Positions 9,271 to 30,300 are shown, counted from the stretch's first letter. The stretch: 64,000 nucleotides of DNA from Basidiobolus meristosporus CBS 931.73 (GCA_002104905.1 MCFE01000126.1:1-64000), one strand, 5' to 3'. Numbers and translations: made by a program. Notes: generated from the sequence alone by a model not told the origin.

Positions 9271-9281
9271 CTTTATATAGC
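9271..9281 (+). promoter_or_regulatory. Putative TATA box of the NRPS
   Basis: CCTTTATATAG about 90 nt upstream of ATG 9367. Confidence 0.35.
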
Positions 9282-9366
9282 CAGTGTTATGACACTCCCT
9301 AGTACATCAAATCGATGAGCTGTTAATTCATCTAATAGTAGAATCTTGACCGTCAGAAATAGAAAT

Positions 9367-12300
9367 ATGCCTTCGATTGAACAACAACGTATCGAAACGA
9401 GCACTCTTCATGAAAACTGCACTGGTTGTGAACCAAGCTCCAGCGTTGAACAAAAAGTACAAGATATCCTAAAGAATACACCCGAGTTTGAGATACCTAT
9501 GGGGCTTTATCACACCTTACTGGAAGCATATCCACACAGCTTTGATGAGAAGGAGCAAAGCCCACAGCCGCTTTATTCTATCTGGGCCGCTTTAGATGGC
9601 TTTCTTAGGAAGCAGCTTCCAGCTTCGCATTTACCTCCAAGCCCTTGGATTTTCAGAAATAATGGCGAAGAGGCAAACCTAAAGCTGTTGATGACATTTG
9701 GAGGTCAAGGCATGATTGGGAAACTAGTGACGGAGCTAAAAGAACTGGTCGATCACTACCCAACTATTGTCAATCCAGTCATTCGTCAAATTGAGAGAGC
9801 CTTAGAAAGTTACAAGGATCTGGAGGATGTTAAATGTATATTTCCTAACGGCTTGAATCTAACTAATTACCTCAAGGAGGGCGGAAATCCCTTGGCCATC
9901 CCAGTCTCCATATCTATGGCTCTGGTTGCTCTGACTCAGCTCTTACATGTCGTCATTTTGTGTAGAATATTAGACCTAAGACCCAATCAGCTTTGCCAGA
10001 GATTCTCAGGAATAGGAGGTCACTCCCAGGGCATTGTGGCGGTTGTGGCATTGGTTGCATCTGATGATGAAGATGAATTTATGTCCAACATTGAACGGGC
10101 AGTTTGCTTTCTCTTCTGGGTTGGAGTATATTGCCAACAGAGTTGGGTTGACGACATGCCCAGCGCCGAGCAAATAGAAGATTGTATCCATAATAACGAG
10201 AACCATCCGTCCCCAATGATAGCTGTACGGAATCTAGATATTACCACGTTGTCTGGAACTATTGAGGAGATTAATGCTGATCTGGTTGATCCCAAGATCG
10301 TGATTGCTTTGCAAAACACAGCGATGGATTTTGTCTGTGCTGGACCGGTCAAGAGCCTATACTTGCTAGCCAGGAGATTCAGGGGCTTAAGTAACGCGCA
10401 TAGGAAGGTTTCAGCAAAGTTCTTGGAAGTGAAAGTTCCGTTCCATACGCCATACTTGAATGAAGCGATTCTGCCTGCCATGACAAAAATTCGTTCTCTC
10501 AAACTTGATTTCTCTCCTGACCGCTTATCACTTCCGATTTTGGCAACTGATGATGGCCGGGATCTCAGATCTAGCAAAAACTTAACCTTAAATTTAATCG
10601 AATTAATCTGTTGTCGGCCCCTAAACTGGCCCCAGACCCTTGGATCAGAAACCTACACGCACAATCTGGATTTCGGTCCTTGTAACACACCTGGTATCAC
10701 TCGATATACGAATGAAATTACCGGAGCCAAGGTCATTCTTGCTAACACGACTTGCACTGCATCAAAGAAATTTTGGACCCTGACTCATCTAATTGCTGAT
10801 CAAGCCCCTCAAGAAGTTACTGAAGAACAGGCCAACACCATGTTGGCTTCCACAACAGAACAAGCACTGATTGATGCCTTCAGTCATGTGCTTGCGATAG
10901 CAAAATCCAAAATTGGTGTTAATTCATCTTTTTTCAGTCTGGGTGGTGATTCCATTCTGGCCATCGAATTGGTCACCTGTGTGCAACAGCGCGGCATCCA
11001 AATTACGATCAAAGATATCTTTGACCATCCAGTAATTACCAAACTCGCTGAGGTTGCCAAGATTGCCGATGCTCCCGTTGTGAGTGATCTGATCCAACCG
11101 TTTTGCCTACTGGGACTGAGGTCTGTGTCCGAAAATATGGAATGGATAACGTCTTTTGGGATTGATCCTGCCAACATAGAAGATGCTTATCCAACTTCAT
11201 CCCTTCAAGCAGGGATGTTGTTTGGTGCGCTAAAGAGGAACGGTTGCTACCTCCTTCAAAACGTTTATAATATTGATGTTCTGTGGATATTGTGAAATTC
11301 AAGACTGCATGGGAGATTGTGTGGAAAGCTAACCCCATCTTCCGCACAACATTCATCACATCTAACGATGTGGATGCTTATCCAGCGCTACAGGTGGTTT
11401 TGAGGACTTCCCCTACGATGGCCCATTTTACAGATTGTTCGGATGAGATGCTCGATACTTTGGTCCAGCGGTACTTATATGATGACCTTCATACTGGTAT
11501 CGAGCTGGGTCAGCATATGGTACGCTTTGCTTTGTTTACAGCGAACTCTGGCACCCACCGTTTTGTTTGGACAATGCTGCATACACTATATGATGGGTGG
11601 TCGATGGACCTGATGCGCCAGGATTTGTACGATGCATACGCTGATGCTACCTTGCAACAGAGGACTCCCTTTTCCATGGCAGTGAAATTCTTGACATCGA
11701 AAGACGATTCCTCGGCGATTGAATACTGGAGATCCAAGCTAGCCGGCTCAACACCCTCTGTCATTACTCGCCTGGTCTCCACATCTAAAGAAATAAGCGC
11801 GGTAAAAAGTTACACCACCGAGGTGGCTTTGGAGATCACGAAATTACAAGAATTTACCAGAAACCATGAAATTACCTTATCCACGCTACTGCGCGCAGCC
11901 TGGGGAATAGTATTGAGCAGGCATACTCACTCGGATGATGTTATGTTTGGAATTACAGTTTCTGGAAGAGATGCTGCGATTCAAGGAGTTGAGGGTATCA
12001 TCGGCCCATGCATTAACACTATCCCACTACGTGTTAAAACTGATGGGAGCTCCAGCGTGCATACATATCTGAGAGAGATTCAACAAGAGCAAGTATCTGC
12101 GCTGCCATTTGAGCATTTGGGATTAGGGAAGATTCAAAATCACTGTACTGAATCGCCTCACTCATCATTGTTCCAGACAATGTTACTCTTTCAGAATTTC
12201 CCAACAAAATCCGAGAACTCGACAAACGTTCTAAAAGAGCTGATGCAACTTCAGAGTAGTGAAATGATGGCCGAGTACCCTCTCACAATAATTGTCGAGC

Positions 12301-15300
12301 AGGAGAAAGCATCACTGACTCTCAAGATGATTTACGATATCCAATTACTACCAGAGGCGCAGATCAAATGTTTGGCATCTCAGTTCCTCACCGCAATTGA
12401 AGAATTGATGAGTGAAAACAAGCTCATCAAAGATATCACACTAATCAGCCATTCAGAGCGTGAACTTTTACTTTGCAAATGGAACAATCAAACCTTCAAG
12501 CTTCCCGATCAAGAATATGTTCATACTCTTTTCGAACAACGGGCAGCCCAAGCGCCTGACTCGATTGCTGTCCAGTTCGAGAGTTCCGCATCCATTACCT
12601 ACGCCGAACTGAATCTGCAAGCTAACCGCTTAGCTCACCATCTGATTGGGCTAGGTGTGACTCCAGAGACCATAGTCCCCATCTGTGTGGACAAATCCAT
12701 CGACATGATAGTCATCATTCTGGCCATCATCAAGGCCGGTGCTGCCTACACCCCATTGGCCACCGACAGTCCTATCGAGCGTACTCGCTTCATTGTGCAT
12801 GAAACAGAGGCAAAGGTGGCTGTGACCGAGGGCAGGTTCAGCCCAGCATTCCAAGATGTCGCTGGGTTGACCGTGATCAATATCGATGAAATCAAGGAGG
12901 TGCTACGCTCGGACCAGCAACCCTCCACCAACCCACAGGTTGCCAACCTGACTCTTGACACGCAGTGCTATGTCATCTTCACCTCCGGATCCACTGGTCT
13001 TCCCAAGGGGGTGACCGTGGAACACCGGGCTATTCTGAGCTCAGTGCTAACATTCACCGATATCCTTGAGATCGACTCCGCCTCACGAGTGATCCTACTG
13101 TCTGCCTACACCTTCGATGTCTCAGTGTTCGAGATCTTCTCCTCGTTGACACAGGGAGGCACTCTCTGCATGGCGGCCAAGGACAACTTGCTCACCTATC
13201 TTCCGGAGATGATCCGAATGATGGATGTTAGCGTTCTTATTGGTACACCGACAATGCTCAGCATGGTTAATCCCGAGGAAGCGCCAAGCCTCCGCTCTCT
13301 CGGTATCGGGGGTGAGACTTTGTCCGAGGCCATGATCACTGCTTGGTGCGATCGTGTCAAGCTGGTCAACTGCTATGGACCAACGGAGGCAGCAGTGATT
13401 GCCTTGACTCATCATATCACCAGTCCTAGTGATCATGGAATCATCGGCTCACCTCAGGGCAATGTCCACGCTTACATACTTGATGATGGCCTTGGCCTCG
13501 CCCCTATCGGGGTGATTGGTGAGCTGTGCCTAAGTGGGTCTCAGCTCGCTCGTGGGTACATGAAGAGACCAGATCTAACGCGTAGTGCATTTGTCGAACA
13601 CCCCTTCTCTGCAGGAGCGAGGTTGTACAGAACCGGTGATTTGGCCAAGTATCGACCGGACGGCAAGATCGAGTTCATCGGGCGCAAGGACACTCAGATC
13701 AAGCTGAACGGATTGCGGATCGAACTCGGAGAGATTGAGAACACTGTGGCCCTCCACCCAGACGTCCACCACATTGGTGTTCTCCCGCTGACTACAAACG
13801 AAGGTCGAAGAACGCTAGTGGCATTTGTGTGCTTCACCTCCACCTCCAGCTCTACTGCCGATGCCGTTTCCGAGATCGGACTTGTTCATGCGGAACACTA
13901 TGACCAAGTCCGCGCGAACATTGCCGAGATTCAAGGAGAAGTGCACCCGCAGCTTGCCCAAGTATATGCTTCCCACGGTCTGGGTTCCACTCAATCGCAT
14001 GCCACTCAGCTCCAGCGGTAAGATTGAGCGCAAGTTGCTCGGCCCCATCTTCTCCAATCTCGACTTGGCCACATTGTATCAGTTTGGAAGTCTGACTGGC
14101 TCCTCGGATGTCACCCCACCCATAACGCCCCTGGAGATTGCTCTCCACGAGATTTGGTGTGAGGTTCTGCAACTCGATCGTCAATCAGTCGGCATTCATG
14201 ATTCTTTCTTCCGACTAGGCGGTGACTCCATCAGAGCCATTCTCCTCTCCTCACAATGCCGTCGCCAAGGTTTAGAGGTGACAGTGCAACAGATATTCGA
14301 CATGCCCACCATTGCCGAGCTGGGTGCGGTAGTCGTTGATGTCTCCACATGCAGCATTTCTGCGGGTTCTCAGGTGACCATTGAGCCGTACTCATTGCTC
14401 GGCCTCTCCGTGAGCGAGCTTCGGAAGCTGCTTGAAGATGAGCTTTCATCATTCGGACTGAAAGCTTCGGAAGTGGAGGATGTGTATCCATGTGCTCCGC
14501 TGCAGGAGGGCTTGCTGTCGGGAGTGCTTCGCAACGAGAGCAACTATCTACTCCAGTCTGTGTACGACATTGAGGGTGACCTGGAAGTGGATCGGTTCGA
14601 GCGTGCTTGGGCATCGGTGACTCAAGCAAATGCCATCCTTCGTACCACTTTTGTCACCAGCTCTGCTGTTGCAAGATCCCCCATTCTACAGGTCGTGAAG
14701 AAGGAGATATCATGCGCTATTGCCACCCACATGAGCAGCGAGGAGTCAATAGAAACCCAGCTCAGTGAATACCTCCGGGAAGATTTGAAGCGCGGAGTGA
14801 AGCTTGGGGAACAGATGATTCGGTTTGCGCTGTTCAGTATATCGGAGAAGAAACACAAGTTTGTGTTGACCCTTTCCCATGCACTTTACGATGGTTGGTC
14901 AATGCCTTTGATTCTTGAGGATTTCTATGGCGCATATATTGAGTTGGAAAGCTGTACAAGGCCCAGTTTCAATTCGTTTATCAAATTCTTGGTCCGCGCA
15001 GATGAAGCCCACTCTAAACAATACTGGACTGAATACTTGGATTCCTACTCAGTCTCTGAGCTGGTCCGTATTCCTGGTCCCAGCTATCAAGTGTGTTCTA
15101 ACCAAGTATATGCTTATGAGGTTCCATGCATTGCTAAAGAAATCATGAAGTTCTCGAAAATCTACGGTGTAACCCCATCAACATTAATACGTGCCGCTTG
15201 GTCTATTGTTCTAAGTAATCACTGTGCCACAAACGATGTGGTATTTGGCGTTACAGTATCAGGGCGTAATCTACCAGTAGTAGGAATAGAAAACATGGTC

Positions 15301-18300
15301 GGACCATGTATTAATACCATTCCCTTCCGTGCAAAGGTGGATAATGGCTCTACAGTAATGGAATGGTTACGTAAGCTCCAAGAAGAGCAAAAAGTAGCGC
15401 TTCCGTACGAATCCTACGGTCTTCGTCAAATCCAGAGTGGACTGCAGCTCCCTAACAACACCGCGCTGTTTCAAACATTGCTCGTATACCAAAACCTGCC
15501 CATGGTTGAGCTTAAAAATATGAGTCAACTGCCGTTCATAATGTCAAGCCAAATTACTGACTTGGGAATGGATTACCCAATAGTCATGACTGTAGAGTTG
15601 GGAGAGACAAGTCTTCATGCAAGATTGGTGTACGATCCTATTCTGCTATCCAAGAACGCAATGCAATGGATTTCGTCGCACTTTGGAGAAGTTCTTCAAG
15701 ATATATTAGCTCGACCACAATCCCAGGTGTCGAAGTTGAATCTAATGTCTATGCATGAGTCGGAGACACTACTTAATGCCTGGAATAATACGACTGTCGA
15801 GCAGCCAACCCAATCATCACTTATCCATTCCCTCTTTGAGGCCCAAGTCCAGAAAAGCCCCAGCTCAACTGCTGTGCAATTCCTGAATGTCAGGAGCCTT
15901 ACCTATACAGAGCTGAATGTCAAAGCAAACCAGCTTGCACATTTACTTATCAGTAATGGGGTGGAAGTCGAAGATATTATTCCTATATGTCTAGACAAGT
16001 CCGAAAACATGATCATCTCAATCTTCGGAGTTTTGAAATCTGGAGGCGCTTATGTTCCTATCGACCCAAAGAATCCTACCGAGAGAAACCAATTTATCAT
16101 TCAGGAAACTGAAGCCAAGCTGGTCATCACCTCGAAGAAATACTCCAGCAATTTCAAAGAAATAGGCGGACTGAAAGTAATAGTTATTGATGGGGAACAT
16201 GTCGAAGAGATCGCCCGGCAACCTACACCGAATCCAAATATTTTCGGCTTGATGAACAAAAACGTGGCATATATTTTGTTCACATCTGGCTCCACTGGTG
16301 CTCCAAAAGGGGTTATTCTGGAGCATGGATCGGTGGTCAACTCTATACACGAGCATCAAAAGGTGTGGAATGCTGACCAGCATACACGCGTCCTGCAATT
16401 TGCCAACTATACCTTTGATGTGTCCGTAATGGATTTCTTTGTTACTTTGTCGAACGGCGCAGTGCTCTGTATTGCACCTCAGGACGAGTTACTAACGGAC
16501 ATCAACTCGGTTATCCAGTTAATGAATGTCAATCATGCGGCACTAACTCCGACTGTTATATCCTTGCTTGACCCGGAAATGGTCACTTGTTTGAAGACCA
16601 TTGCCGCAAGCGGTGAGGCACTTACGTCTCAGATTGTCAGAACCTGGTCCTCGCGCCTTCGTCTGCTAAACTTCTATGGCCCCACAGAAGCGGCTGTGAA
16701 TAACACTTACCAAAGAATGGAAGTTGATACCTTCCCTAATCTCATTGGGAGACCTCTAGGAAACAACACTATCTATATATTGGATGAGGAATTACGCACA
16801 GTACCAATCGGAGCAGTAGGCGAGCTGTGCATTGGCGGATATCAGCTTGCACGAGGATATCTGAAGAATAAGCAGCTAACTGACTCAATATTCGTAGAAA
16901 ATCCTTTCGTTCCCGGACAAAGACTGTACAAAACCGGAGATTTGGCGAAATTTGACGCAGATGGGGCGGTAGAGTATATTGGACGTCGCGATCACCAAGT
17001 CAAACTAAATGGGCTTCGTATTGAGCTGGGAGAGATCGAGAGCATCCTATCTCAAGAGACTGTGGTGCAGAGTGCAACCGTGCTCCTGTTGGAGGTGGGT
17101 CTGGGAAAACGTTCATTGGTGGCGTTTTTGAATTTCAAAGAGATGGCCAGCACCTCCTCAAAGTTATCTCTGATCCAAAACGATGTGAACGGTAGGATTG
17201 CCTATTTGATTGCTGATGTTCAGAGCAGCCTGGAATCAAAAGTAGCGTACTATATGATGCCGAATATATGGGTTCCAATCAACACCATTCCACTCACTCA
17301 AAATGGAAAGGCAGATCGTAAGAAGCTGAATACCTTTTTCCAACAATTGTCTACGAAAGATATTCAAGCCTGTAGTAAAATTCCTGGTGACGCAAAGCCA
17401 GAGGATCCTACTTCTGCGATGGAGACATCCTTGAGAGGTATCTGGGGCAATGTACTCAACCTTGAGGAATCCGAAATTAGCATACATGATTCATTCTTCC
17501 GTTTGGGTGGTGATTCTATTTCTGCTATTCAAGTGGCCTCTAAATGTCGTCAGATTGGCATCTATTTCTCAGTTCAGCAGCTATTGAAGCATTCTACCAT
17601 TGCAAAACTTTCCTCGATCGCGGAAACCAAGTCAGGAATTAGTTTGCAATCCAATGAACCTGCTCTGGGAAGCATATTGTTAACGCCTGTTCAACGATGG
17701 TACCTTCAACAAGCAGACCAAAAATGCTACTTCCACCAGTCTTTCTTCCTGAAAGTCTCCAAGTATGTAGACTCTAATGCCGTCAAGATTGCCTTGACTA
17801 CCTTGGTCAAGCATCATGATATGCTGCGTTGCAGATTCACGAATGACAATGGCCACTGGTCGCAGGAAATCTCCTCTACCTCCGAGGAGATATCTCTTGA
17901 CGTGGTGGATATCACCAGAGAGAATCTCGAAGAGGCTGTGGCCACTGTGCACGATAGAATAGATGTCTTCACTGGTCCTATGTGTGCCTTCGGCCTGTTC
18001 ACTCTTGAGGGTGCTCAGTATCTCCTACTAGCCATCCACCATCTTGCGGTGGACTTTGTCTCGTGGCGAGTGCTGTTTGAGGACCTGGAAGACCTGTTAC
18101 TCGGAAAGCCCCTCCCCGGAAAGACCATGTCCTTCCAACAATGGTCAAGACTTCTCACTGAGCATGCGGCCAGTCTGGACACCAGTGACTGGCCCGTGGA
18201 CAACATCCATAACCGGTTCAGCTCGGATCTAGATCTGACTAGGAACACGGTTGACTCTAGCAAGACCATGACGTTCACCCTGGACAAGGAGGTGAGCCAA

Positions 18301-21300
18301 CTATTGCTTGGAAGTAGCAACGATGCGTTCCGCACCAAGCCAACTGAGCTGATTGTGGCTGCCTTGGCAGAGGCGTTTTGTGAAGTGTTCAGCCAGGACG
18401 GAATGACTCTGGCGATGGAGGCTCATGGAAGAGAGCCATGGGAGGATAGTATTGACATCTCCCGGACTGTTGGGTGGTTCACTTCGATCTATCCCCTGGC
18501 ACTGGCCATCTCCCCTGGTGACCACACCACCTCGATTCTCAAACGCGTGAAGGATACAATGAGAATGATTCCATCAAATGGGTTTGCCTATGGTCTACTC
18601 CGATTCCTCAACGAGCAGCACTCGCACAGGTACAAAGAGGACCTTCTCCCGATATCGTTCAACTATGCCGGTCGTTTCCAGCAACTGGAGAAGTCCGACT
18701 CCATGCTGCAATTCGTGACTGATATCCAGCTGAAAGATCACAGCTTTTCACCAGACTCCAGGCGTTTGTTTGTGTTTGACGTTGGAGCAATTGCCCTCTA
18801 TGACACAATGCAGTTCAGCATCACCTTCAGCGCGAATCTTCACTCAGAGGTGCTGATTCAGTCCTGGCTCAGTGCATGGAACACAAAGTTGGTGACGCTG
18901 GTAACCTTGTGTGCTCAGCAAGAGAATGCCCAGTTCACTCTCTCCGATCTTCCGCTCCTTAGCATGTCTACCGAGGAACTCGACACCCTGATGAGCATCA
19001 CCCTCCCTGAGGCAAATATCGACATGAACAACGTCGAGGATGTGTATCCATGCCTTGCTATGCAGGATGGCCTGTTGGCAGGTACTATGAAAGACAAGGA
19101 GCAGTATGTCGTGCGAGTTGTGTTTGACATCACCGGGGCATTCGACTCTGAGCGATTCTTTGCTGCTTGGCATCAAACCATCGAGAACAATGCTGCCTTG
19201 CGAACAGTGTTTGTGCCCAACCCCAGCTCCATGAGTGTTGGCTGTCTGCAAGTACTGCTCAAGAAACTGACTGTTCCCACTGAGCAGTATACCTGCAACA
19301 AGGAGGATGTGGACCTGATGATCGAAGAGTACCTGAAGCAGACTGTCAACAAGGGATTCAACATGGGTGAGCCGATGCTGGCACTCGCCATGTTCCAGAT
19401 CACCGAGGAGCATCGTCGCTTCGTTTGGGTCATCCATCATGCCATCTTTGACGGTTGGTCCAACGGAATCATCATGAACGATGTACTCAGCACATACCTT
19501 GGCTTTGAAGTGGCAAGCAAGCCTTCATACAGGGAATTCGTGAAGCACATCATCTCTCAAAGCGCCGAAGACTCTAAGCATTTCTGGGAGCTTCAGCTTT
19601 CGGGCGTCGAGCCATCGGTATTCCCCAGGCTCAGCACAGAGGCTGTGTCCTTACCGAGAGCCATCGTGTCACATGAGAAGATTGACTACACTGTACAGGA
19701 GATAAGCAAATTTGCCCAAGAGAACAAGATCACGGTAGCCACACTTCTTCGTGCTGGATGGGGATTGCTGCTTCAGCAGTACCTGAACAGTGAGGACGTG
19801 GTGTTCGGAGTCACTGTTTCGGGAAGGAATGTAGCAATCGATGGGGTGGAGAGCATTGTTGGGCCATGTATTAGCACTATACCATTCAGAGTTCAGTATG
19901 AGGAAAAGAAGGTATCTGAATGGTTAGAGGGCCTACATGCCCAGTATGTTGCTTCAATTCCTCACGAAACTTATGGAGTGTCGTACATTCAATCTGATTT
20001 ATTCTTTGGGGAGCAATTCTTTGATTCCTTAATGGTGTTCCAAAACTATCCCGAAACCAAGGACATGGGTGCCGATTTTAAGATATCTCTGAACCGATTT
20101 ACCGAAAACATTGAATATCCATTGTTCCTAAGCTTGGTCCCAGCAGGAGATGCGCTATCTATCACTATTGAAGTTAAAGATATTGGAGTTTCCTCAGAAG
20201 CGGCTTCGTTGTTCGCTATTCGCTATAAACACATCATTAAAATGCTCATCGATTATGTTGATGAAGAACTAAAAAATGTGGAGCTGAATATGCCTTGGGA
20301 GAAAGCTGAACTACTCAAAAACAGTGAAGGAATCAAGACGAGCCCGACAGAAAAGCTGTTACATGAAATCTTCGAGGAACGTGCTCAGGAGGTACCAAAA
20401 TCAGTAGCATTGCTTTCATTCGATGGCACATCGGTGAGCTATCGCGACCTGAATAGTAGAGCCAACAAATTTGCACATTATTTGGTTGAAAAGGGGCTTC
20501 GTACAGGTGACCTAGTCCCACTGTGCTTTGAGAAATCGGTTGATACCATAGTAGCTATACTTGGAGTTCTTAAAGCTGGCGCCGCATATGTTCCTGTGGA
20601 TCCTAATACTCCCGCTAAGCGCTTAGAATTCATTTTGAATGAGTGCAATGCCAATATTGTGCTTACCTCTTCTGCAACACAATCCGTATTTGCGAGCGCC
20701 GAATTTTCGACTTACCAGAATATCGTATTCCTGGAGGAAGTGTATACATCCTACTCTCCAGAAAATCTTCAAGATCTCAGTATAACAAACAACAATCTCT
20801 GCTATGTGATCTTCACGTCTGGCTCAACCGGTACGCCTAAGGGTGTCATGATTGAGCACAGAAATGTCACCAATCTTATGAAGAACCATCAGTCTATATG
20901 GGAGATGAATAGCAGTAGCAGAGTCCTGCAATTTTCTAACTTTATCTTTGACATGTCTGTTGCAGAAATCTTCTATACTCTTTCTATTGGCGCTTGTCTC
21001 TGTATTGCACCCAAAGATAGTCTCCTGTCCGATCTAGCTGGGGTAATCAATGCCATGCAGGTGGATACTGTGGAGCTCACCCCAACCGTATTGGGTCTCT
21101 TGAGTCCTGAGCTGGTCCCAACACTGAAGCACGTTGCTTTGGGCGGAGAGTTGGTCAGCGAGCAACTGGTGAAGACCTGGTCCAAACACGTTCGTCTATT
21201 CAACATGTACGGCCCAACCGAAACCACGGTTCATGTCACCTACAATGACCTGAATGCCCTCCCCGAAGGAATAGTCATTGGTAAGCCAGTGGGTGGAATG

Positions 21301-24300
21301 GCAGCCTACATTGTAACCAGAAACAAAAACCTTGCGCCTATCGGCGTGGTCGGTGAGCTATGCATCGGTGGTCCCCAGCTGGCTCGTGGATACCTCAACC
21401 GGCCTGATCTGACAGAGGCATCCTTTGTAGTCAACCCATTCGCACCTGGCCAGAAGATGTACCGCACCGGCGACTTGGCTAAGCTCAGGCATGACGGATC
21501 CATCGAATATGTTGGTCGCAAGGATCATCAGGTGAAGCTCAACGGCCTGCGCATTGAGCTTAGTGAGATCGAGAATGTCATTGCTCAAGTGCAACAGGTA
21601 CAGAGTGTTGCCACTTTCCTGGTCACCTCCGCTGAAGACAAGCAAGAGCTGGCGGCATTTGTGAGTTTTAAGGAGCTCCTCCCCTCGGAGACCACCGAGC
21701 CAGCACTTGTTGGTGAGCTGGGAGCATCAACAGCATCACAGCTGATCGCTGTCGCCCGAGAACATGCAGCCAGCAAGCTTGCTCACTACATGATCCCCAC
21801 ACTCTGGATTCCGCTCACCGGAATGCCACACACCATCAGTGGCAAGGTTGACAGAAAAAGACTGGAGTGGCTCTTCACTCAAATGGACCTTCATCACATT
21901 CGTTCGTTTACCTCTGCGGCAGCTGACCGTCAAAGCGAAAGCCCGAGAACCAAGCTGCAGCTTGTGCTTCATGAAATATGGTGCCAGGTGTTGAGACTCC
22001 CTGAGAACACGTTTGGATTCACGACTCCTTCTTCAGCATTGGTGGAGACTCTATCAGTGCCATCAAGCTTTCGGCCAAGTGTCGCGCACATGGGATTCCA
22101 TTGACGGTTCAGCAGATATTCAATCACCCAACCATCTTCTCAATCAGCCAGATAGCAGATCCATCCGAGGTGGCCTGCGAGGAATCTGACATGAGCCCTC
22201 AGGAGCCTCCTCCACAGCCGTTCACTCTTCTTGGTCTGAGCCATGACCAGGTTGCCAGATTGGTGAGTGAAGAAGTCAGCTGTTCGGTATTCAGCCAGAG
22301 GAAGTGGAGGACATCTATCCATGCTCCCCTCTACAAGAAGGCATGATCTCTGGATTACTGAAGAGTGGCTCAAACTATTTGACGCGGTCTGTTTACAACA
22401 TAGAGGGTGACTTCGATGTGGCTAGATTCGAGCAATCCTGGAAGGCAGTCACCGATGCAAACCCCATTCTGCGCACCACATTCATCACAAGCAATGCTTC
22501 CGACAGACACACCACATTGCAGGTGGTGCTCAAGACTGCCAATCCCATGGTACGCCTCTTCAGCACCACTCCTGGCAAGGCTTCCGAAGTAGTGGCAGAC
22601 TATCTCAGCAGTGATCATGAGGCTGGTATCACCTTGGGTGCACCGATGATGCGATTTGCCATTTTCCAAGTCACCCCCACAAGCTACAGATTTGTGTGGA
22701 CCATCCTGCATGCACTGTATGATGGATGGTCGATGCCTTTGATTCTTGGTGATGTTTACAGCCATTATCTTTTGTCCACTGTCCCAAGCAGAACTCCTTA
22801 CAGCAGCTTTATCAGATATATCTGCCAACAAGACGAGGAATGCGCTTTGAACTACTGGACTGAGTACATGGCCGGCGTGACCCATACTGAGTTGGTCCGT
22901 ATTCCTGCCTCGTACCGAGTGAGGGCCAATTCTGAGCTCCGTCAACGGGTGTCTGTACCCATGGAAGGCATCCAAGCTTTCGCTCAAACCCAAGGCATCA
23001 CCATATCCACCCTGCTCCGAGCTGCGTGGTCGATTGTACTCGGGCAGCACTCTGCTACGGATGACATTGTATTTGGGGTTACTGTCTCTGGCCGTAACAT
23101 TCCGGTAGATGGGATTGAGCAGCTGATGGGTCCATGCATCAATACCATTCCGTTCAGAACGGTGATAGATTATGATCAGACTGTTGCTGAGTGGTTGAAA
23201 TCACTGCAACAACAACAAGCATCAAGTCTGCCCTTTGAGTGGATAGGTATCAACTTCATCCAACGTCAGTTAGGTGAGAGGTACGCGTCGTTTCAATCAT
23301 TGCTTTTATATCAAAATCTACCTCAAGACAAGACCGCCCTACAAGATAGCCTTCCTTTTGGTATATCCTTTATGGATGGTGAGATGGGTATTGAATATCC
23401 TGTTGTTATGATCATCACCTCAGATGAAGATAGTTTACAAGTCAACCTTACGTACGATCACAATTTGGTTGACGAGCGGGTGGCTAAATTGTTGGCCTCG
23501 AGCTTTTCAACTACGCTAAGCCAAGTAGTGAATGGAAGCAACACCTCCGTTGGTTCAATTGAATCAGCAATTGAACCAGGTGACCAATCACTACTATTTA
23601 ACAACATTCAGTTCGGCAATGCGCACTGTACTATACATGAGCTATTCGAAAATCAAGTATTCAGCACACCAAACGCTCCAGCAGTGGAGTTTGAAGATCA
23701 AACCTCTTTAACCTACTCCGAATTGAATATCAAGGCCAATACACTATCCAAGATATTGCAATCGAAAGGTGTAGGCCCGGATGTTATCGTCCCCATATGC
23801 ATGAAAAAATCCATTGATCTGATTGTGACGATATTGGCTATACTGAAAGCTGGAGGCGCATACTGCCCGCTTGAATCCGAATTCCCTCAAGATCGTATAT
23901 CGTTTATCTTGCAAGAGACGAATGCCAAATTCGTGATATGCAGCGCTGAATACTCCACCAAATTCAAGTTCATTGAAGGTTTGCATGTATTTGCGGCAGA
24001 AAATCTCTTATCAATGGATGTTTCATCCATAATCGCTATTCCACAAAAGGAGGCACCCTCATCAGCAAATCTATGCTATGTGCTATTCACGTCTGGCTCA
24101 ACCGGCAAACCTAAAGGTGTCATGATTGAGCACAGAAACGTCATCAATCTTATGAAGAACCATCAGTCTATATGGGAGATGAATAGCAGTAGCAGAGTCC
24201 TACAGTTTGCAAATTATATCTTTGATATGTCTGTAGCTGATATCTTCTATACTCTTTCTATTGGCGCTTGTCTCTGTATTGCACCCAAAGATAGTCTCCT

Positions 24301-27300
24301 GTCCGATCTAGCTGGGGTAATCAATGCCATGCAGGTGGATACTGTGGAGCTCACCCCAACCGTATTGGGTCTCTTGAGTCCTGAGCTGGTCCCAACACTG
24401 AAGCACGTTGCTTTGGGCGGAGAGTTGGTCAGCGAGCAACTGGTGAAGACCTGGTCCAAACACGTTCGTCTATTCAACATGTACGGCCCAACCGAAACCA
24501 CGGTTCATGTCACCTACAATGACCTGAATGCCCTCCCCGAAGGAATAGTCATTGGTAAGCCAGTGGGTGGAATGGCGGCCTACATTGTAACCAGAAACAA
24601 AAACCTTGCGCCTATCGGCGTGGTCGGTGAGCTATGCATCGGTGGTCCCCAGCTGGCTCGTGGATACCTCAACCGGCCTGATCTGACAGAGGCATCCTTT
24701 GTAGTCAACCCATTCGCACCTGGCCAGAAGATGTACCGCACCGGCGACTTGGCTAAGCTCAGGCATGACGGATCCATCGAATATGTTGGTCGCAAGGATC
24801 ATCAGGTGAAGCTCAACGGCCTGCGCATTGAGCTTAGTGAGATCGAGAATGTCATTGCTCAAGTGCAACAGGTACAGAGTGTTGCCACTTTCCTGGTCAC
24901 CTCCGCTGAAGACAAGCAAGAGCTGGCGGCATTTGTGAGTTTTAAGGAGCTCCTCCCCTCGGAGACCACCGAGCCAGCACTTGTTGGTGAGCTGGGAGCA
25001 TCAACAGCATCACAGCTGATCGCTGTCGCCCGAGAACATGCAGCCAGCAAGCTTGCTCACTACATGATCCCCACACTCTGGATTCCGCTCACCGGAATGC
25101 CACACACCATCAGTGGCAAGGTTGACAGAAAAAGACTGGAGTGGCTCTTCACTCAAATGGACCTCCATCACATTCGTTCGTTTACCTCTGCGGCAGCTGA
25201 CCGTCAAAGCGAAAGCCCGAGAACCAAGCTGCAGCTTGCGCTTCATGAAATATGGTGCCAGGTGTTGAGACTCCCTGAGAACACGTTTGGAATTCACGAC
25301 TCCTTCTTCAGCATTGGTGGAGACTCTATCAGTGCCATCAAGCTTTCGGCCAAGTGTCGCGCACATGGGATTCCATTGACGGTTCAGCAGATATTCAATC
25401 ACCCAACCATCTTCTCAATCAGCCAGATAGCAGATCCATCCGAGGTGGCCTGCGAGGAATCTGGCATGAGCCCTCAGGAGCCTCCTCCACAGCCGTTCAC
25501 TCTTCTTGGTCTGGGTCCATGACCAGGTTGCCAGATTGGTGAGTGAAGAAGTCAAGCTGTTCGGTATTCAGCCAGAGGAAGTGGAGGACATCTATCCATG
25601 CTCCCCTCTACAAGAAGGCATGATCTCTGGATTACTGAAGAGTGGCTCAAACTATTTGACGCAGTCTGTTTACAACATAGAGGGTGACTTCGATGTGGCT
25701 AGATTCGAGCAATCCTGGAAGGCAGTCACCGATGCAAACCCCATTCTGCGCACCACATTCATCACAAGCAATGCTTCCGACAGACACACCACATTGCAGG
25801 TGGTGCTCAAGACTGCCAATCCCATGGTACGCCTCTTCAGCACCACTCCTGGCGAGGCTTCCGAAGTAGTGGCAGACTATCTCAGCAGTGATCATGAGGC
25901 TGGTATCACCTTGGGTGCACCGATGATGCGACTTGCCATCTTCCAAGTCACCCCCACAAGCTACAGATTTGTGTGGACCATCCTGCATGCACTGTATGAT
26001 GGATGGTCGATGCCTTTGATTCTTGGTGATGTTTACAGCCATTATCTTTTGTCTACTGTCCCAAGCAGAACTCCTTACAGCAGCTTTATCAGATATATCT
26101 GCCAACAAGACGAGGAATGCGCATTGAACTACTGGACTGAGTACATGGCCGGCGTGACCCATACTGAGTTGGTCCGTATTCCTGCCTCGTACCGAGTGAG
26201 GGCCAATTCTGAGCTCCGTCAACGGGTGTCTGTACCCATGGAAGACATCCAAGCTTTCGCTCAAACCCAAGGCATCACCATATCCACCCTGCTCCGAGCT
26301 GCGTGGTCGATTGTACTCGGGCAGCACTCTGCTACGGATGACATTGTATTTGGGGTTACTGTCTCTGGCCGTAACATTCCGGTAGATGGGATTGAGCAGC
26401 TGATGGGTCCATGCATTAATACCATTCCGTTCAGAACGGTGATAGATTATGATCAGACTGTTGCTGAGTGGTTGAAATCACTGCAACAACAACAAGCATC
26501 AAGTTTGCCCTTTGAATCATTAGGCTTCAGCAAGATAAAGCAGATTCATCAGGAGTTGGCTGAATTGTCGCTTAATACGCTACTGGTAGTTCAAAATCTT
26601 CCCTTAGCAGGAATTGAAAGTCAAAGCCTACCTTTTACCATTACTGGAAATGCCGGAAATATGAGCTCTGAGTTTCCAATTGTTGTTGTAGTTGAGCCAA
26701 CCAATAGTCATTTGGATGTCAATTTCATTTATGATCAAACTATTGTGGAGGCTGCATTCATTGAGATTCTGGCTTCACATTTATGCTCAGTTATCGAAAA
26801 TCTGAAAACAGACACTACAAAGAGCGTTAGTCAGGTTAGTCTACTTAGCGACCAGGAGAAGGTGATGCTGACGACTACCTGGAATGATACAGAATGCCCT
26901 ATACCGAATAATGTATTTATCCATACTCTATTCGAACAACAAGCTGCCCAGGTACCCAACTCGATTGCTGTCCAGTTCGAGGGTTCCGCATCCATTACCT
27001 ACGCCGAACTGAATCTGCAAGCTAACCGCTTAGCTCACCATCTGATTGGGCTAGGTGTGACTCCAGAGACCATAGTCCCCATCTGTGTGGACAAATCCAT
27101 CGACATGATTGTCATCATTCTGGCCATCATCAAGGCCGGTGCTGCCTACACCCCATTGGCCACCGACAGTCCTATCGAGCGTACTCGCTTCATTGTGCAT
27201 GAAACAGAGGCAAAGGTGGCTGTGACCGAGGGCAGGTTCAGCCCAGCATTCCAAGATGTCGCTGGGTTGACCGTGATCAATATCGATGAAATCAAGGAGG

Positions 27301-30300
27301 TGCTACGCTCGGACCAGCAACCCTCCACCAACCCACAGGTTGCCAACCTGACTCTTGACACGCAGTGCTATGTCATCTTCACCTCCGGATCCACTGGTCT
27401 TCCCAAGGGGGTGACCGTGGAACACCGGGCTATCCTGAGCTCAGTGCTAACATTCACCGATATCCTTGAGATCGACTCCGCCTCACGAGTGATCCTACTG
27501 TCTGCCTACACCTTCGATGTGTCAGTGTTCGAGATCTTCTCCTCGTTGACACAGGGAGGCACTCTCTGCATGGCGGCCAAGGACAACTTGCTCACCTATC
27601 TTCCGGAGATGATCCGAATGATGGATGTTAGCGTTCTTATTGGTACACCGACAATGCTCAGCATGGTTAATCCCGAGGAAGCGCCAAGCCTCCGCTCTCT
27701 CGGTATCGGGGGTGAGACTTTGTCCGAGGCCATGATCACTGCTTGGTGCGATCGTGTCAAGCTGGTCAACTGCTATGGACCAACGGAGGCAGCAGTGATT
27801 GCCTTGACTCATCATATCACCAGTCCTAGTGATCATGGAATCATCGGCTCACCTCAGGGCAATGTCCACGCTTACATACTTGATGATGGCCTTGGCCTCG
27901 TCCCTATCGGGGTGATTGGTGAGCTGTGCCTAAGTGGGTCTCAGCTCGCTCGTGGGTACATGAAGAGACCAGATCTAACGCGTAGTGCATTTGTCGAACA
28001 CCCCTTCTCTGCAGGAGCGAGGTTGTACAGAACCGGTGATTTGGCCAAGTATCGACCGGACGGCAAGATCGAGTTCATCGGGCGCAAGGACACTCAGATC
28101 AAGCTGAACGGATTGCGGATCGAACTCGGAGAGATTGAGAACACTGTGGCTCTCCACCCAGACGTCCACCACATTGGTGTTCTCCCGCTGACTACAAACG
28201 AAGGTCGAAGAACGCTGGTGGCATTTGTGTGCTTCACCTCCACCTCCAGCTCTACTGCCGATGCTGTTTCCGAGATCGGACTTGTTCATGCGGAACACTA
28301 TGACCAAGTCCGCGCGAACATTGCCGAGATTCAAGAGAAGTGCACCCGCAGCTTGCCCAAGTATATGCTTCCCACGGTCTGGGTTCCACTCAATCGCATG
28401 CCACTCAGCTCCAGCGGTAAGATTGAGCGCAAGTTGCTCGGCCCCATCTTCTCCAATCTCGACTTGGCCGCATTGTATCAGTTTGGAAGTCTGACTGGCT
28501 CCTCGGATGTCACCCCACCCACAACGCCCGTGCAGAATGCTCTCCACGAGATTTGGTGTGAGGTTCTGCAACTCGATCGTCAATCAGTCGGCATTCATGA
28601 TTCTTTCTTCCGACTAGGCGGTGACTCCATCAGAGCCATTCTCCTCTCCTCACAATGTCGTCGCCAAGGTTTAGAGGTGACAGTGCAACAGATATTCGAT
28701 ATGCCCACCATTGCCGAGCTGGGTGCGGTAGTCGTTGATGTCTCCACAAGTAGCATTTCTGCGGGTTCTCAGGTGACCATTGAGCCGTACTCATTGCTCG
28801 GCCTCTCCGTGAGCGAGCTTCGGAAGCTGCTTGAAGATGAGCTTTCATCATTCGGACTGAAAGCTTCGGAAGTGGAGGATGTGTATCCATGTGCTCCGCT
28901 GCAGGAGGGCTTGCTGTCAGGAGTGCTTCGCAACGAGAGCAACTATCTACTCCAGTCTGTGTACGACATTGAGGGTGACCTGGAAGTGGATCGGTTCGAG
29001 CGTGCTTGGACATCGGTGACTCAAGCAAATGCCATCCTTCGTACCACTTTTGTCACCAGCTCTGCTGTTGCAAGATCCCCCATTCTGCAGGTCGTGAAGA
29101 AGGAGATATCATGCGCTATTGCCACCCACATGAGCAGCGAGGAGTCAATAGAAACCCAGCTCAGTGAATACCTCCGGGAAGATTTGAAGCGCGGAGTGAA
29201 GCTTGGGGAACAGATGATTCGGTTTGCGCTGTTCAGTATATCGGAGAAGAAACACAAGTTTGTGTTGACCCTTTCCCATGCACTTTATGATGGCTGGTCA
29301 TTACCACTCATATTGAGTGATGTATATGTGGCATACATGGGTGGTTTACTCCCAACAAGGAAGCCCTATTCAGTATTTGTTGAGTATCTACTTAACCAGA
29401 ATGAACAGCTGGCTTCACAACATTGGCAGCGCTACTTGGATGAAATGGTTCCTACGGAACTTGTTCGTGTTAGCGACTCACAAAAGGTCCATACCTCTTC
29501 TTTCGTCAGAAACTCCGTACCCCTTGAACTTGCGTGCATCAAAAACTTTTGCAAGCAAGCACGGAGTTACTCTTTCTACACTTGTACGAGCAGCATGGAC
29601 CCTCGTCCTCAGCAAGCATGCAAATACTGAGGATGTACTATTTGGTGTTACTGTTTCCGGGCGAAACATTCCAGTTGATGGTATAGATGAGATGACTGGA
29701 CCTTGCATCAATACAATCCCCTTTAGAAGCACTGTTAATCAGGAACAATCGGTTTTAGACTGGTTATTGGAAATTCAACAGCAACAGAGTCGTACGCTTC
29801 CCTATGAATACTTCAGTCTTCGACAAATCCAACAAATCTGCCAAGTTGACAACCGCCGACCATTATTCCAAAGCTTGTTAGCGTTCCAAAACTTACCTAA
29901 TGTGGACCAACAGTCCAGCATTTCATTACCTTTCGCAGTTATTCCTTCCAAGGGTGAACTTGGTTTGGAATACCCGGTTGTTGTTTCGGTGGAACCCCAT
30001 GGAGCGACGCTGAACATTGAAATTGCCTACGATGCCAACGCAATTCCTACCACTGAGGCCAAATGGTTGCTATCACATATGTGTACAGCGGTCTACAATT
30101 TAGTTCTACAATCTGGCGAGAATGTTGGTATGGTATCGTTGATAGATGATGTTGAAAGACGTATCCTTCTTGACGATTGGAATCCCATTGAGAATGAGAA
30201 GGTCCAGGGTGACTATATTCACCAGCTTTTCGAACGTCAAGTGCTTGAATCCCCAAATGAGCCAGCTGTGGCATTCTACAACGGCACCACACTTACCTAC

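Follow-up and report, generated by a model that had tools for sequence, protein, structure and literature searches.

How active and how stable a nonribosomal peptide is depends strongly on its N-terminal acylation. In bacterial lipopeptide synthetases and in the aspergillicin A synthetase, the first residue is acylated by a starter condensation (Cs) domain, which takes the acyl group from CoA or a free ACP and has no carrier ahead of it; the Cs domain of MalA is inactive (PMC9365243). How MalA, from early-diverging fungi, acetylates the malpinins is unexplained, and this step is thought to occur in trans (PMC9365243). The emericellamide synthetase EasA starts with T-C and is served by a separate acyltransferase, EasC, and a CoA ligase, EasD: the polyketide of a clustered PKS is loaded onto the carrier and becomes the N-cap (PMC3901194). 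The peptaibol synthetase Tex1 of Trichoderma virens carries a built-in KS-AT-ACP module of the PKS type as its inferred acetyl supplier (PMC11610996). Finally, bacterial modular PKSs possess AT-ACP loading didomains and Actinomycetota stand-alone AT-PP proteins; in both, an AT of the PKS/FabD type (PF00698) beside a carrier serves as priming unit and feeds a KS.

Here we analyze a nonribosomal peptide synthetase (NRPS) of Basidiobolus meristosporus CBS 931.73 that begins with an acyltransferase (AT) of the fatty acid synthase (FAS) type, followed by a carrier (T0) and a condensation domain (C1). The window comprises 64,000 nucleotides (GCA_002104905.1 MCFE01000126.1:1-64000).

Domain Organization of the Synthetase

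The gene at 9367-38649 on the plus strand encodes AT-T0-(C-A-T)-(C-A-T-E)-(C-A-T)x3-(C-A-T-E)-(C-A-T-E)-TE (Table 1). Pfam matches, envelopes and motifs give seven C, seven A, eight T and three E domains and one TE; by this census, the Basidiobolus enzyme is a multimodular NRPS of seven repeated C-A-T units and a release domain, and its gene has no introns. C1 retains xHxxxDG and clusters with those C domains of the enzyme that are of the LCL type, and the E domains carry the motifs HHLAVDF and HHLVVDL. The gene holds internal repeats of 99-100 % identity; A1 and A5 are 99 % identical, and T0 shares 32-48 % identity with T1-T7. Residues 1-90 precede the AT as an extension in which a Pfam search found neither FAS_N nor any other match, and which is modeled as helices of low confidence (pLDDT 36-69).

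Table 1. Positions of the features of the synthetase gene in the window.
Feature	Position	Strand	Basis or remark
TATA-like element cctttatatagcc	9273..9279	+	~90 nt 5' of start codon; consensus match only
N-terminal extension, aa 1-90	9367..9636	+	ATG at 9367, in-frame stop 9316-9318 ahead
FAS-type acyltransferase (AT), aa 91-465	9637..10761	+	Pfam SAT 2e-11, PDB sequence match, Foldseek
Predicted catalytic Ser220 codon (GHSQG)	10024..10026	+	Invariant column in 56 FAS ATs; aligns with the GHSQG serine of Fas1 AT
Predicted catalytic His360 codon (PFH)	10444..10446	+	Invariant column; aligns with PFHS of Fas1 AT
AT-T0 linker, aa 466-497	10762..10857	+	Between domain envelopes
Carrier T0, NRPS PCP type	10858..11070	+	Pfam PP-binding 3e-14, aa 499-562, 53 bits
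Predicted phosphopantetheine Ser529 of T0	10951-10953	+	GGDS at aa 526-529
Condensation domain C1, LCL-like	11176..12473	+	Pfam Condensation 1e-56, envelopes
Catalytic His of C1 in LHTLYDG	11580-11582	+	Motif
Adenylation domain A1	12525..14100	+	Pfam AMP-binding 1e-74
Carrier T1	14134..14343	+	Envelope; protein identical to T5
Modules 2-7: C2-A2-T2-E, C3-A3-T3, C4-A4-T4, C5-A5-T5, C6-A6-T6-E, C7-A7-T7-E	14473..38001	+	Pfam, envelopes
TE release domain and stop codon	38002..38652	+	Pfam Thioesterase 2e-26; GYSMG at 38218

Family Assignment of the N-Terminal Acyltransferase

The initial annotation, made from the DNA alone, had described FAS β-like motifs in colinear order at the start of the NRPS, and all of those it listed are indeed present, in order and in a single frame from the ATG at 9367: FGGQG (aa 111-115), GHSQG (218-222), PSPM (281-284), GPVKSLY (326-332), PFH (358-360), DGRDLR (396-401) and LDFGP (434-438). 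The Pfam family SAT (PF16073) matches aa 111-360 (44 bits; cut-off 22.8). In a phmmer search of PDB sequences, the top matches are fungal FAS β AT domains (E 1e-54 to 5e-43): aa 94-461 align with residues 139-526 in the FAS β of Thermomyces lanuginosus (4v58_G, E 1e-54) and with residues 145-532 in yeast Fas1 (2uv8 chain G, E 4e-45). The similarity far exceeds what chance would produce. The matched part is the AT domain of FAS β, and the alignment ends ahead of the enoyl reductase (ER), about where the annotation had let the domain stop; the GGDS carrier and C domain that it had placed directly behind appear as Pfam PP-binding, Condensation and AMP-binding matches in series.

The nearest sequence relatives are likewise fungal FAS β AT domains (E 1e-54 to 1e-55). 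Among 1.84 billion representative proteins, 554 relatives were found, the best 150 of which are all type I FASs or AT-only proteins; the three best named ones are FASs of Mycoemilia, Basidiobolus ranarum and Entomophthora, all Zoopagomycota, the phylum of the host. An AF2 model of the domain, with pLDDT mostly above 90, retrieves fungal FAS β as its top 22 Foldseek matches (E 1e-28 to 6e-19), ahead of mycobacterial FAS-I (E 1e-11) and of PKS AT, FabD and NR-PKS SAT domains (~1e-10), the SAT domains of CTB1 and CazM matching at E ~4e-10 with 12-15 % identity. The model of T0 is poor, as this carrier lay outside the alignment. Two trees, of 142 and 53 rows, were built: the domain falls inside the FAS AT family with a support of 100/100 against MPT, and neither tree settles the position of its branch or the FAS donor. 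The domain does not fall among ordinary PKS ATs, an outcome that the annotation had named as a refutation. The annotation's main observation, a FAS-type domain fused in frame to an NRPS, is confirmed, and its reading as a built-in acylation module is supported in part. The comparisons place the AT among the acetyltransferases of microbial type I FASs, and with neither PKS ATs nor NR-PKS SATs. The window holds no KS, and there is no NR-PKS among the best 150 relatives. The surroundings are also not those of a FAS chain: FAS_N does not precede the AT, and PP-binding and Condensation domains follow it.

With the AT of Fas1, the domain shares the fold, the colinear motifs, the Ser-His dyad and the FGGQG loop. 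It differs in lacking FAS_N before and the ER after it, in its presumed acceptor, a PCP-type carrier instead of the FAS ACP, and in an identity to any FAS AT of only 30-36 %. Given this divergence and the long branch (0.85-1.3) of unsettled position, the AT did not arise recently by copying of the host FAS1; the divergence also means that its specificity may have changed.

Catalytic Residues and the Nature of the Acyl Group

All invariant residues are kept (G113, G218, S220, N317, G326 and H360), among them the catalytic serine that the annotation had called intact. Out of 36 columns conserved to at least 85 % in 139 FAS ATs, the domain retains 30, compared with a mean of 32.3 and a minimum of 23 in the other members; in its sequence, the AT looks complete and catalytically intact. 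Single-nucleotide differences between reads and window in the AT region (five synonymous, five non-synonymous) are too few to show constraint.

The arginine that binds malonyl in MPT (FYRG) corresponds to valine in the AT (FWVG) and to isoleucine in the Fas1 ATs of T. lanuginosus and yeast (FWIG/FFIG). The carboxylate-binding arginine of malonyl transferases is thus absent, as expected for membership in the Fas1 AT group, and a hydrophobic residue takes its place in both.

NR-PKS SAT domains receive hexanoyl from a dedicated FAS. Along these lines, the substrate of AT-T0 could conceivably be an acyl group of medium or long chain, taken from acyl-CoA or straight from the carrier protein of a FAS or PKS, which would make the product a lipopeptide rather than an N-acetyl peptide; we consider this unlikely. 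The wide distance of the AT from those of primary FASs (no more than 36 % identity, long branch), the 6 of 36 conserved columns that differ and a best Pfam model, SAT, that also covers starter-unit transacylases would fit such a change of substrate, and the known fungal T0-C start of EasA accepts long acyl chains (PMC3901194). However, the exchange of isoleucine for valine in the pocket is conservative, by fold and sequence the AT is much nearer to FAS ATs than to NR-PKS SATs, and no gene for a FAS, PKS or acyl ligase dedicated to this supply lies in the window. A tblastn search of the window with a whole fused FAS matched only FAS residues 126-540, so that no KS, ER, DH, MPT or ACP is present, in agreement with the loading module without KS that the annotation had proposed. 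The window thus shows no alternative supplier of the acyl group: ahead of C1 and elsewhere there is no KS or other FAS part, and no A domain precedes C1. The ORFs around the NRPS gene match CHAP, KH, RGS/GPCR, AN1 and integrase or remain without a match.

Frame Breaks and Read Support

The annotation had placed AT, T0 and C1 in a region at 9367-12440; this layout holds, but a frame break inside C1 had escaped it. In the window, the NRPS gene contains six one-base frame breaks, two of which were compared with contigs assembled from the short-read runs X1 and X2. At 11277/11278, within C1, the window is one base short, and the short-read contigs add G or T, which restores the frame; at 13935, in A1, it carries a surplus base without counterpart in the contigs, and the assignment to the A1 copy is backed by X2 record 14, which agrees at all A1-specific bases. 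The other breaks, read from the window sequence, lie in modules 2-7 near 22015, 22260, 25515 and 29560. Because the two compared breaks are absent from the short-read contigs, these two are probably assembly errors. Introns as the cause of the frame changes were rejected, since the protein alignment continues straight across the breaks, which marks them as one-base indels.

The short-read contigs cover 9300-11690, where the frame-restoring base is the sole indel. An X1 contig (10158-11278) crosses the AT-T0 linker without indels, and the two X2 contigs at 10063-10782 and 10753-11690 share 30 nt in this part; the AT-T0 junction, for which the annotation had asked for long reads or cDNA, is thereby crossed by short-read contigs. 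From the AT through T0 and C1 to A1, the frame is continuous in the reads. As X1 and X2 may derive from the sample of the assembled genome or from a sister strain, their support is not fully independent. In a third run of the same study, X3, which bears another species label, nearly identical fragments occur at only 3-5 % of the X1/X2 depth; they are possibly cross-contamination and were left out as independent support.

Given the indel errors of the assembly and the nearly identical repeats inside the gene, the AT-NRPS junction could in principle be an assembly chimera. We regard this as extremely unlikely: a single ORF of unique sequence runs from the AT through T0 into C1, and contigs of both runs reach across the junction.

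The six breaks could also be real and the gene, or AT-T0 alone, a decaying relic or structural leftover that is unexpressed or inactive, in the manner of the truncated, inactive N-terminal C domains reported for MalA and the cyclosporin and penicillin synthetases (PMC9365243); the sequencing runs listed include none of RNA. The relic reading is improbable in our view, because all breaks are single-base indels, no in-frame stop occurs over ~29 kb, and both breaks compared with reads are missing from the short-read contigs, with the copy assignment checked. Moreover, the AT keeps every invariant residue at a conservation score in the normal range, and indel errors would fit the assembly of B. 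meristosporus CBS 931.73 from PacBio reads.

Proposed Priming Mechanism and Comparison with Known Systems

The analysis establishes which domains are present and in what order, the family and the intact catalytic residues of the AT, and the continuous frame from the AT to A1; the activity of the AT, the acyl group it loads, T0 as its acceptor and the product are inferred. AT-T0 is probably a cis-fused initiation didomain that primes the heptamodular NRPS with a short, non-carboxylated acyl group, most likely acetyl, leading to release of an N-acyl heptapeptide: Ser220 of the AT would take the acyl group from acyl-CoA and load it onto T0 through the phosphopantetheine at Ser529. C1 would then condense acyl-S-T0 with the amino acid on T1, and six more modules would elongate the chain, with epimerization at residues 2, 6 and 7, before the TE releases the product. 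The prediction is searchable, as the N-acyl heptapeptide should have residues 1 and 5 alike, residues 3 and 4 similar and D-configuration at positions 2, 6 and 7.

AT folds are capable of hydrolysis as well as of transfer. The domain might accordingly not load a starter but clear wrongly primed carriers as an acyl hydrolase or editor, comparable to the AT-like hydrolases found in trans-AT PKSs, a role that we consider very unlikely: loading modules are built in just this way, with a dedicated T0 directly before a C domain, C1 would find no donor substrate on an unloaded T0, and the nearest relatives of the AT are priming transferases.

Priming by AT-T0 would resemble the EasA system in the carrier directly ahead of the first C domain and in an acyl group that passes from an acyltransferase to the N-terminus (PMC3901194). 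While the acyltransferase of EasA is a separate protein that loads the polyketide of a clustered PKS, the Basidiobolus AT is cis-fused and of the FAS type, and genes for a PKS, a ligase or a separate loading enzyme are absent from the window. With Tex1, the synthetase has in common a built-in, carrier-linked N-terminal module as presumed acetyl supplier (PMC11610996); in contrast to the PKS-type module of Tex1, it has no KS, and its FAS-type AT lacks the malonyl arginine. Cs domains reach the same outcome, acylation of the first residue (PMC9365243), but C1 is LCL-like and stands behind AT and T0, an arrangement foreign to the C-starter class. The nearest look-alikes in a protein-atlas feature search are AT-carrier didomains (scores of 0.82, to be taken as leads only); unlike the bacterial AT-ACP didomains, the AT described here is of the FAS type and lies ahead of a C domain.

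Distribution and Significance

A phmmer search with T0, C1, A1 and TE found no match in the best 150 of the 554 AT relatives, none of which carries NRPS domains. A word-indexed search with the first piece of the protein (642 aa) retrieved nothing beyond a FAS fragment of Basidiobolus ranarum and two weak matches to NRPSs, and a metagenome search with the protein gave no relative. The literature searched holds no description of an NRPS primed by a FAS AT; the annotation, to which this architecture was not known from characterized NRPSs, is in line with both the best 150 relatives and this literature. As a predicted route to the acyl capping of peptides, a FAS AT with its own carrier seems to be undescribed. 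We lean slightly towards the view that the Basidiobolus lineage adopted a FAS acetyltransferase domain as the self-contained AT-T priming unit of an NRPS. If so, this route to N-acylated peptides would stand beside starter C domains, trans-loaded T0 carriers and KS-AT-ACP modules as a new initiation logic. It would also show clearly how secondary metabolism can draw on a domain of primary metabolism, and it would offer a compact candidate part for engineering N-capped peptides or acyl caps in synthetases.

Short AT-only relatives occur in other settings, none of them linked to an NRPS: P0006, which encodes an AT alone (481 aa), sits close to the end of its contig, P0004 and P0011 belong to a series of FAS_N-AT genes arranged in tandem, and bacterial AT-like proteins of ~385 aa adjoin EF-P or lipid A acyltransferase genes. 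In B. meristosporus B9252, Tabima et al. (2020) listed one 'NRPS-PKS hybrid', N161_14278, which might be this NRPS gene, scored through its AT.

An FAS-Type Acetyltransferase Opens the Synthetase

The start of the nonribosomal peptide synthetase (NRPS) with a domain (AT) resembling the acetyltransferase of the fatty acid synthase (FAS) beta chain, followed by a carrier domain (T0), is a real feature that the initial annotation had observed correctly, as confirmed by motifs, Pfam, PDB sequence matches, and tblastn: All eight motifs named for AT-T0 were found, colinear and in a single frame, and Pfam scored the AT region as SAT (PF16073, 44 bits; cut-off 22.8) and the following domain as PP-binding. 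Amino acids 94–461 align with residues 139–526 of Thermomyces lanuginosus FAS beta (E 1e-54) and with residues 145–532 of yeast Fas1 (E 4e-45) among the PDB sequences, where all 12 significant matches to AT are fungal FAS beta chains and the match ends, as claimed, at the passage of FAS into the enoyl reductase. In a tblastn search of the window with a whole fused FAS, only FAS residues 126–540 matched.

HMMER, run in full over 1.84 billion representative proteins (library clustered at 50 % identity), returned 554 AT relatives, the best 150 of which (E 2e-55 to 4e-21) were sorted with domain probes from a fused FAS. Each of these 150 is either an FAS of fungi (two-chain or fused), an FAS-I-like chain of bacteria, or a short protein consisting of AT alone or of FAS_N-AT. 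The three best named matches are FAS proteins from Mycoemilia scoparia, Basidiobolus ranarum, and Entomophthora muscae, which all belong to Zoopagomycota, and B. ranarum supplies the best named relative of AT; Pfam confirmed the FAS architecture in five of the relatives. With an AlphaFold model of AT built on 55 relatives (pLDDT mostly >90), the first 22 Foldseek matches in the PDB all belong to fungal FAS beta chains (E 1e-28 to 6e-19), followed by mycobacterial FAS-I (about 1e-11); polyketide synthase (PKS) ATs, FabD, and two NR-PKS SATs, those of CTB1 and CazM, score at about 1e-10 with 12–18 % identity. In our trees, AT falls within the FAS AT family, separated with 100/100 support from the malonyl/palmitoyl-transfer (MPT) domain of FAS; the AT branch is long (0.85–1.3) and has no firm placement inside this family. 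Given this position and the fold ranking, AT does not group with ordinary PKS ATs, the outcome that the initial annotation had named as a refutation. Of the FAS origin it proposed, family membership stands, but the trees do not show that AT was copied recently from the FAS1 of the host.

AT keeps all six columns that are invariant in a 56-sequence alignment (G113, G218, S220, N317, G326, H360) and 30 of the 36 columns with a conservation of 85 % or more among 139 FAS ATs, whose members average 32.3 (minimum 23). The malonyl-binding arginine of MPT (FYRG) aligns with a valine in AT (FWVG) and with an isoleucine in the ATs of T. lanuginosus FAS and yeast Fas1; this valine would fit a non-carboxylated acyl substrate, leaving the chain length free. 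Because the closest relatives are acetyl-priming and this pocket position is conservatively changed, the cargo of AT-T0 would most likely be an acetyl or other short acyl group.

Domain Order and Module Duplication

Pfam and a local phmmer mapping gave the order of domains in the following table (C, condensation; A, adenylation; T, carrier; E, epimerization; TE, thioesterase).

Features of the NRPS gene and of neighboring open reading frames
Feature	Position	Strand	Basis or remark
Candidate TATA-like element	9273–9279	+	Upstream of the ATG
In-frame stop	9316–9318	+	Upstream of the ATG
NRPS reading frame	ATG 9367 to stop 38650–38652	+	Six single-base frame changes
AT	9637–10761	+	Pfam and phmmer mapping
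T0	10858–11070	+	Pfam and phmmer mapping
Modules 1–7: C1-A1-T1, C2-A2-T2-E, C3-A3-T3, C4-A4-T4, C5-A5-T5, C6-A6-T6-E, C7-A7-T7-E	After T0	+	Pfam and phmmer
A1-T1	12582–14352	+	Near-identical to A5-T5
A5-T5	26982–28751	+	Near-identical to A1-T1
TE	38002–38649	+	Pfam and phmmer mapping; motif GYSMG
CHAP-domain ORF	39972–40517	+	181 aa; Pfam E 1e-14
Integrase-core (rve) ORF	63265–63681	+	E 5e-9; AT-rich stretch at the end of the window

With seven adenylation domains, the expected product would be a heptapeptide. C3 and C7, which directly follow E domains, carry the motif HHAIFDG, and C1, C2, C4, C5, and C6 carry (L/S)HxLYDG, two classes consistent with a split into LCL and DCL domains; the E domains read HHLAVDF or HHLVVDL. 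The closest relative of module 4 comes from Dimargaris (Zoopagomycota, 33 %), with NRPSs of bacteria and ascomycetes next (30–37 %), and owing to this mixture we do not claim that the NRPS part came from bacteria. Several domains of the gene are identical or closely alike: A1-T1 and A5-T5 show about 17 differences in 1770 nt (99–100 % identity in protein), T3 and T4 including their linkers are identical in protein, and the sister domains A3/A4, C4/C5, C3/C7, and C2/C6 share 83 %, 81 %, 80 %, and 70 %, respectively. This pattern suggests that modules were duplicated within the gene, or homogenized by gene conversion, only very recently, and repeated residues would therefore be predicted in the peptide.

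Frame Breaks and the AT-T0 Junction

The frame changes lie near 11278, 13935, 22015, 22260, 25515, and 29560, and introns were ruled out at all six because the protein alignment to sister modules runs gap-free across each. Two short-read runs from one sample (X1 and X2; k-mer depth about 180–340) contain 0.86–0.87 of the sampled words. At 11277/11278, contigs of both runs have one extra base, giving a codon GGT or GTT and restoring the frame. X1 holds two alleles here at about equal depth (G 101, T 114; Gly or Val), which fits two haplotypes or nuclear types, and the frameshift may have arisen from a consensus error at a heterozygous site. At 13935, contigs of both runs have one base fewer than the window. 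Since the A1-T1 DNA is 99 % identical to A5-T5, the identity of the copy was checked: X2 record 14 (13314–14122) agrees with the window wherever the sequence is specific to A1 (five of five sites), yet misses the base. Two of the six breaks, those at 11278 and 13935, are thus absent from the reads, as an error-prone long-read assembly would explain; PacBio reads underlie the genome assembly of one sequenced strain, B. meristosporus CBS 931.73.

One X1 contig (10158–11278) crosses the AT-T0 junction without an indel and two X2 contigs (10063–10782 and 10753–11690) overlap there by 30 nt, so that the fusion is no assembly chimera; the initial annotation had asked for long reads or cDNA across this junction, and it is short-read contigs that span it. 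As these runs may be of the same or a sister strain, they support the fusion but do not replicate it independently. Fragments at least 99 % identical to the window at 10197–15012 also occur in X3, a run of the same study labelled as another species, at 5–18x word depth versus 180–340x in X1/X2, and look more like carry-over from one library into another than like an orthologue conserved in that species. Among the sequencing runs listed, none was of RNA.

A Putative Built-In N-Acyl Loading Module

T0 has the canonical motif FFSLGGDS and is of the same type as T1–T7 (32–48 % identical), and C1 keeps the catalytic histidine and is 29–40 % identical to C2–C7; given these identities, T0-C1 has not been copied recently from a T-C pair inside the enzyme. 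Neither ahead of C1 nor among the neighboring ORFs in the window does a KS, A domain, acyl ligase, or PKS occur, and the lack of a KS in the loading module is likewise borne out by tblastn with the fused FAS. Judged from the sequence, AT-T0 is therefore the only visible source of the donor substrate for C1.

The FAS-type AT with its carrier is best interpreted as an N-acyl loading module built into the enzyme and, as such, would be a new form of NRPS initiation. Beyond the domain assignments, we infer the following course: An acyl group would pass from acyl-CoA to Ser220 of AT and from there to the phosphopantetheine on Ser529 of T0, whereupon C1 would form the amide between the T0-borne acyl group and residue 1. 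Six elongations with epimerization at residues 2, 6, and 7 would follow, and TE would release the finished chain.

Four routes to N-acylation on fungal or bacterial assembly lines emerged from the literature. One is by starter C domains, including an acetylating one in the aspergillicin synthetase (PMC9365243); in MalA this domain is inactive, and acetylation is presumed to take place in trans (PMC9365243). Compared with such synthetases, the Basidiobolus NRPS is not C-first. EasA starts with T0-C loaded by the separate enzymes EasC and EasD (PMC3901194); AT-T0-C1 would resemble a cis version of the EasC–EasA handover, but lacks a trans loading enzyme. Peptaibol synthetases use a KS-AT-ACP module (PMC11610996), and AT-T0 might be likened to the module of Tex1 minus its KS, differing further in that its AT is not PKS-type. 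The latter also sets it apart from the AT-ACP didomains that prime bacterial PKS systems. In the literature outside subscription journals, we found no NRPS described as having T-C fused to an FAS-type AT or SAT. For B. meristosporus B9252, Tabima et al. list a single "NRPS-PKS hybrid" that is left unexplained and could be the present gene.

Neighboring Genes and Free-Standing Relatives

The neighboring ORFs encode CHAP, KH, RGS/GPCR, AN1 finger, and integrase proteins. CHAP is a peptidoglycan amidase/peptidase domain found mostly in bacteria and phages, and its ORF, directly downstream of the NRPS, is an unusual companion of a fungal synthetase. The ORF coding for a retroviral-type integrase core probably represents what is left of a retrotransposon.

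On a 10-kb Logan contig (L002:1643–9948; SRR27278213), three to four genes coding only for FAS_N and a FAS-type AT (525, 896, and 167+716 aa) stand in tandem; elsewhere, the N-terminal AT unit of Fas1 thus also occurs as a gene of its own, in amplified form. Stand-alone proteins of about 385 aa from bacteria (L003:1050–2222, L004:2207–3358) make up a clade with good support beside the AT domains of bacterial FAS-I, and their genes adjoin an EF-P or a lipid A acyltransferase gene.
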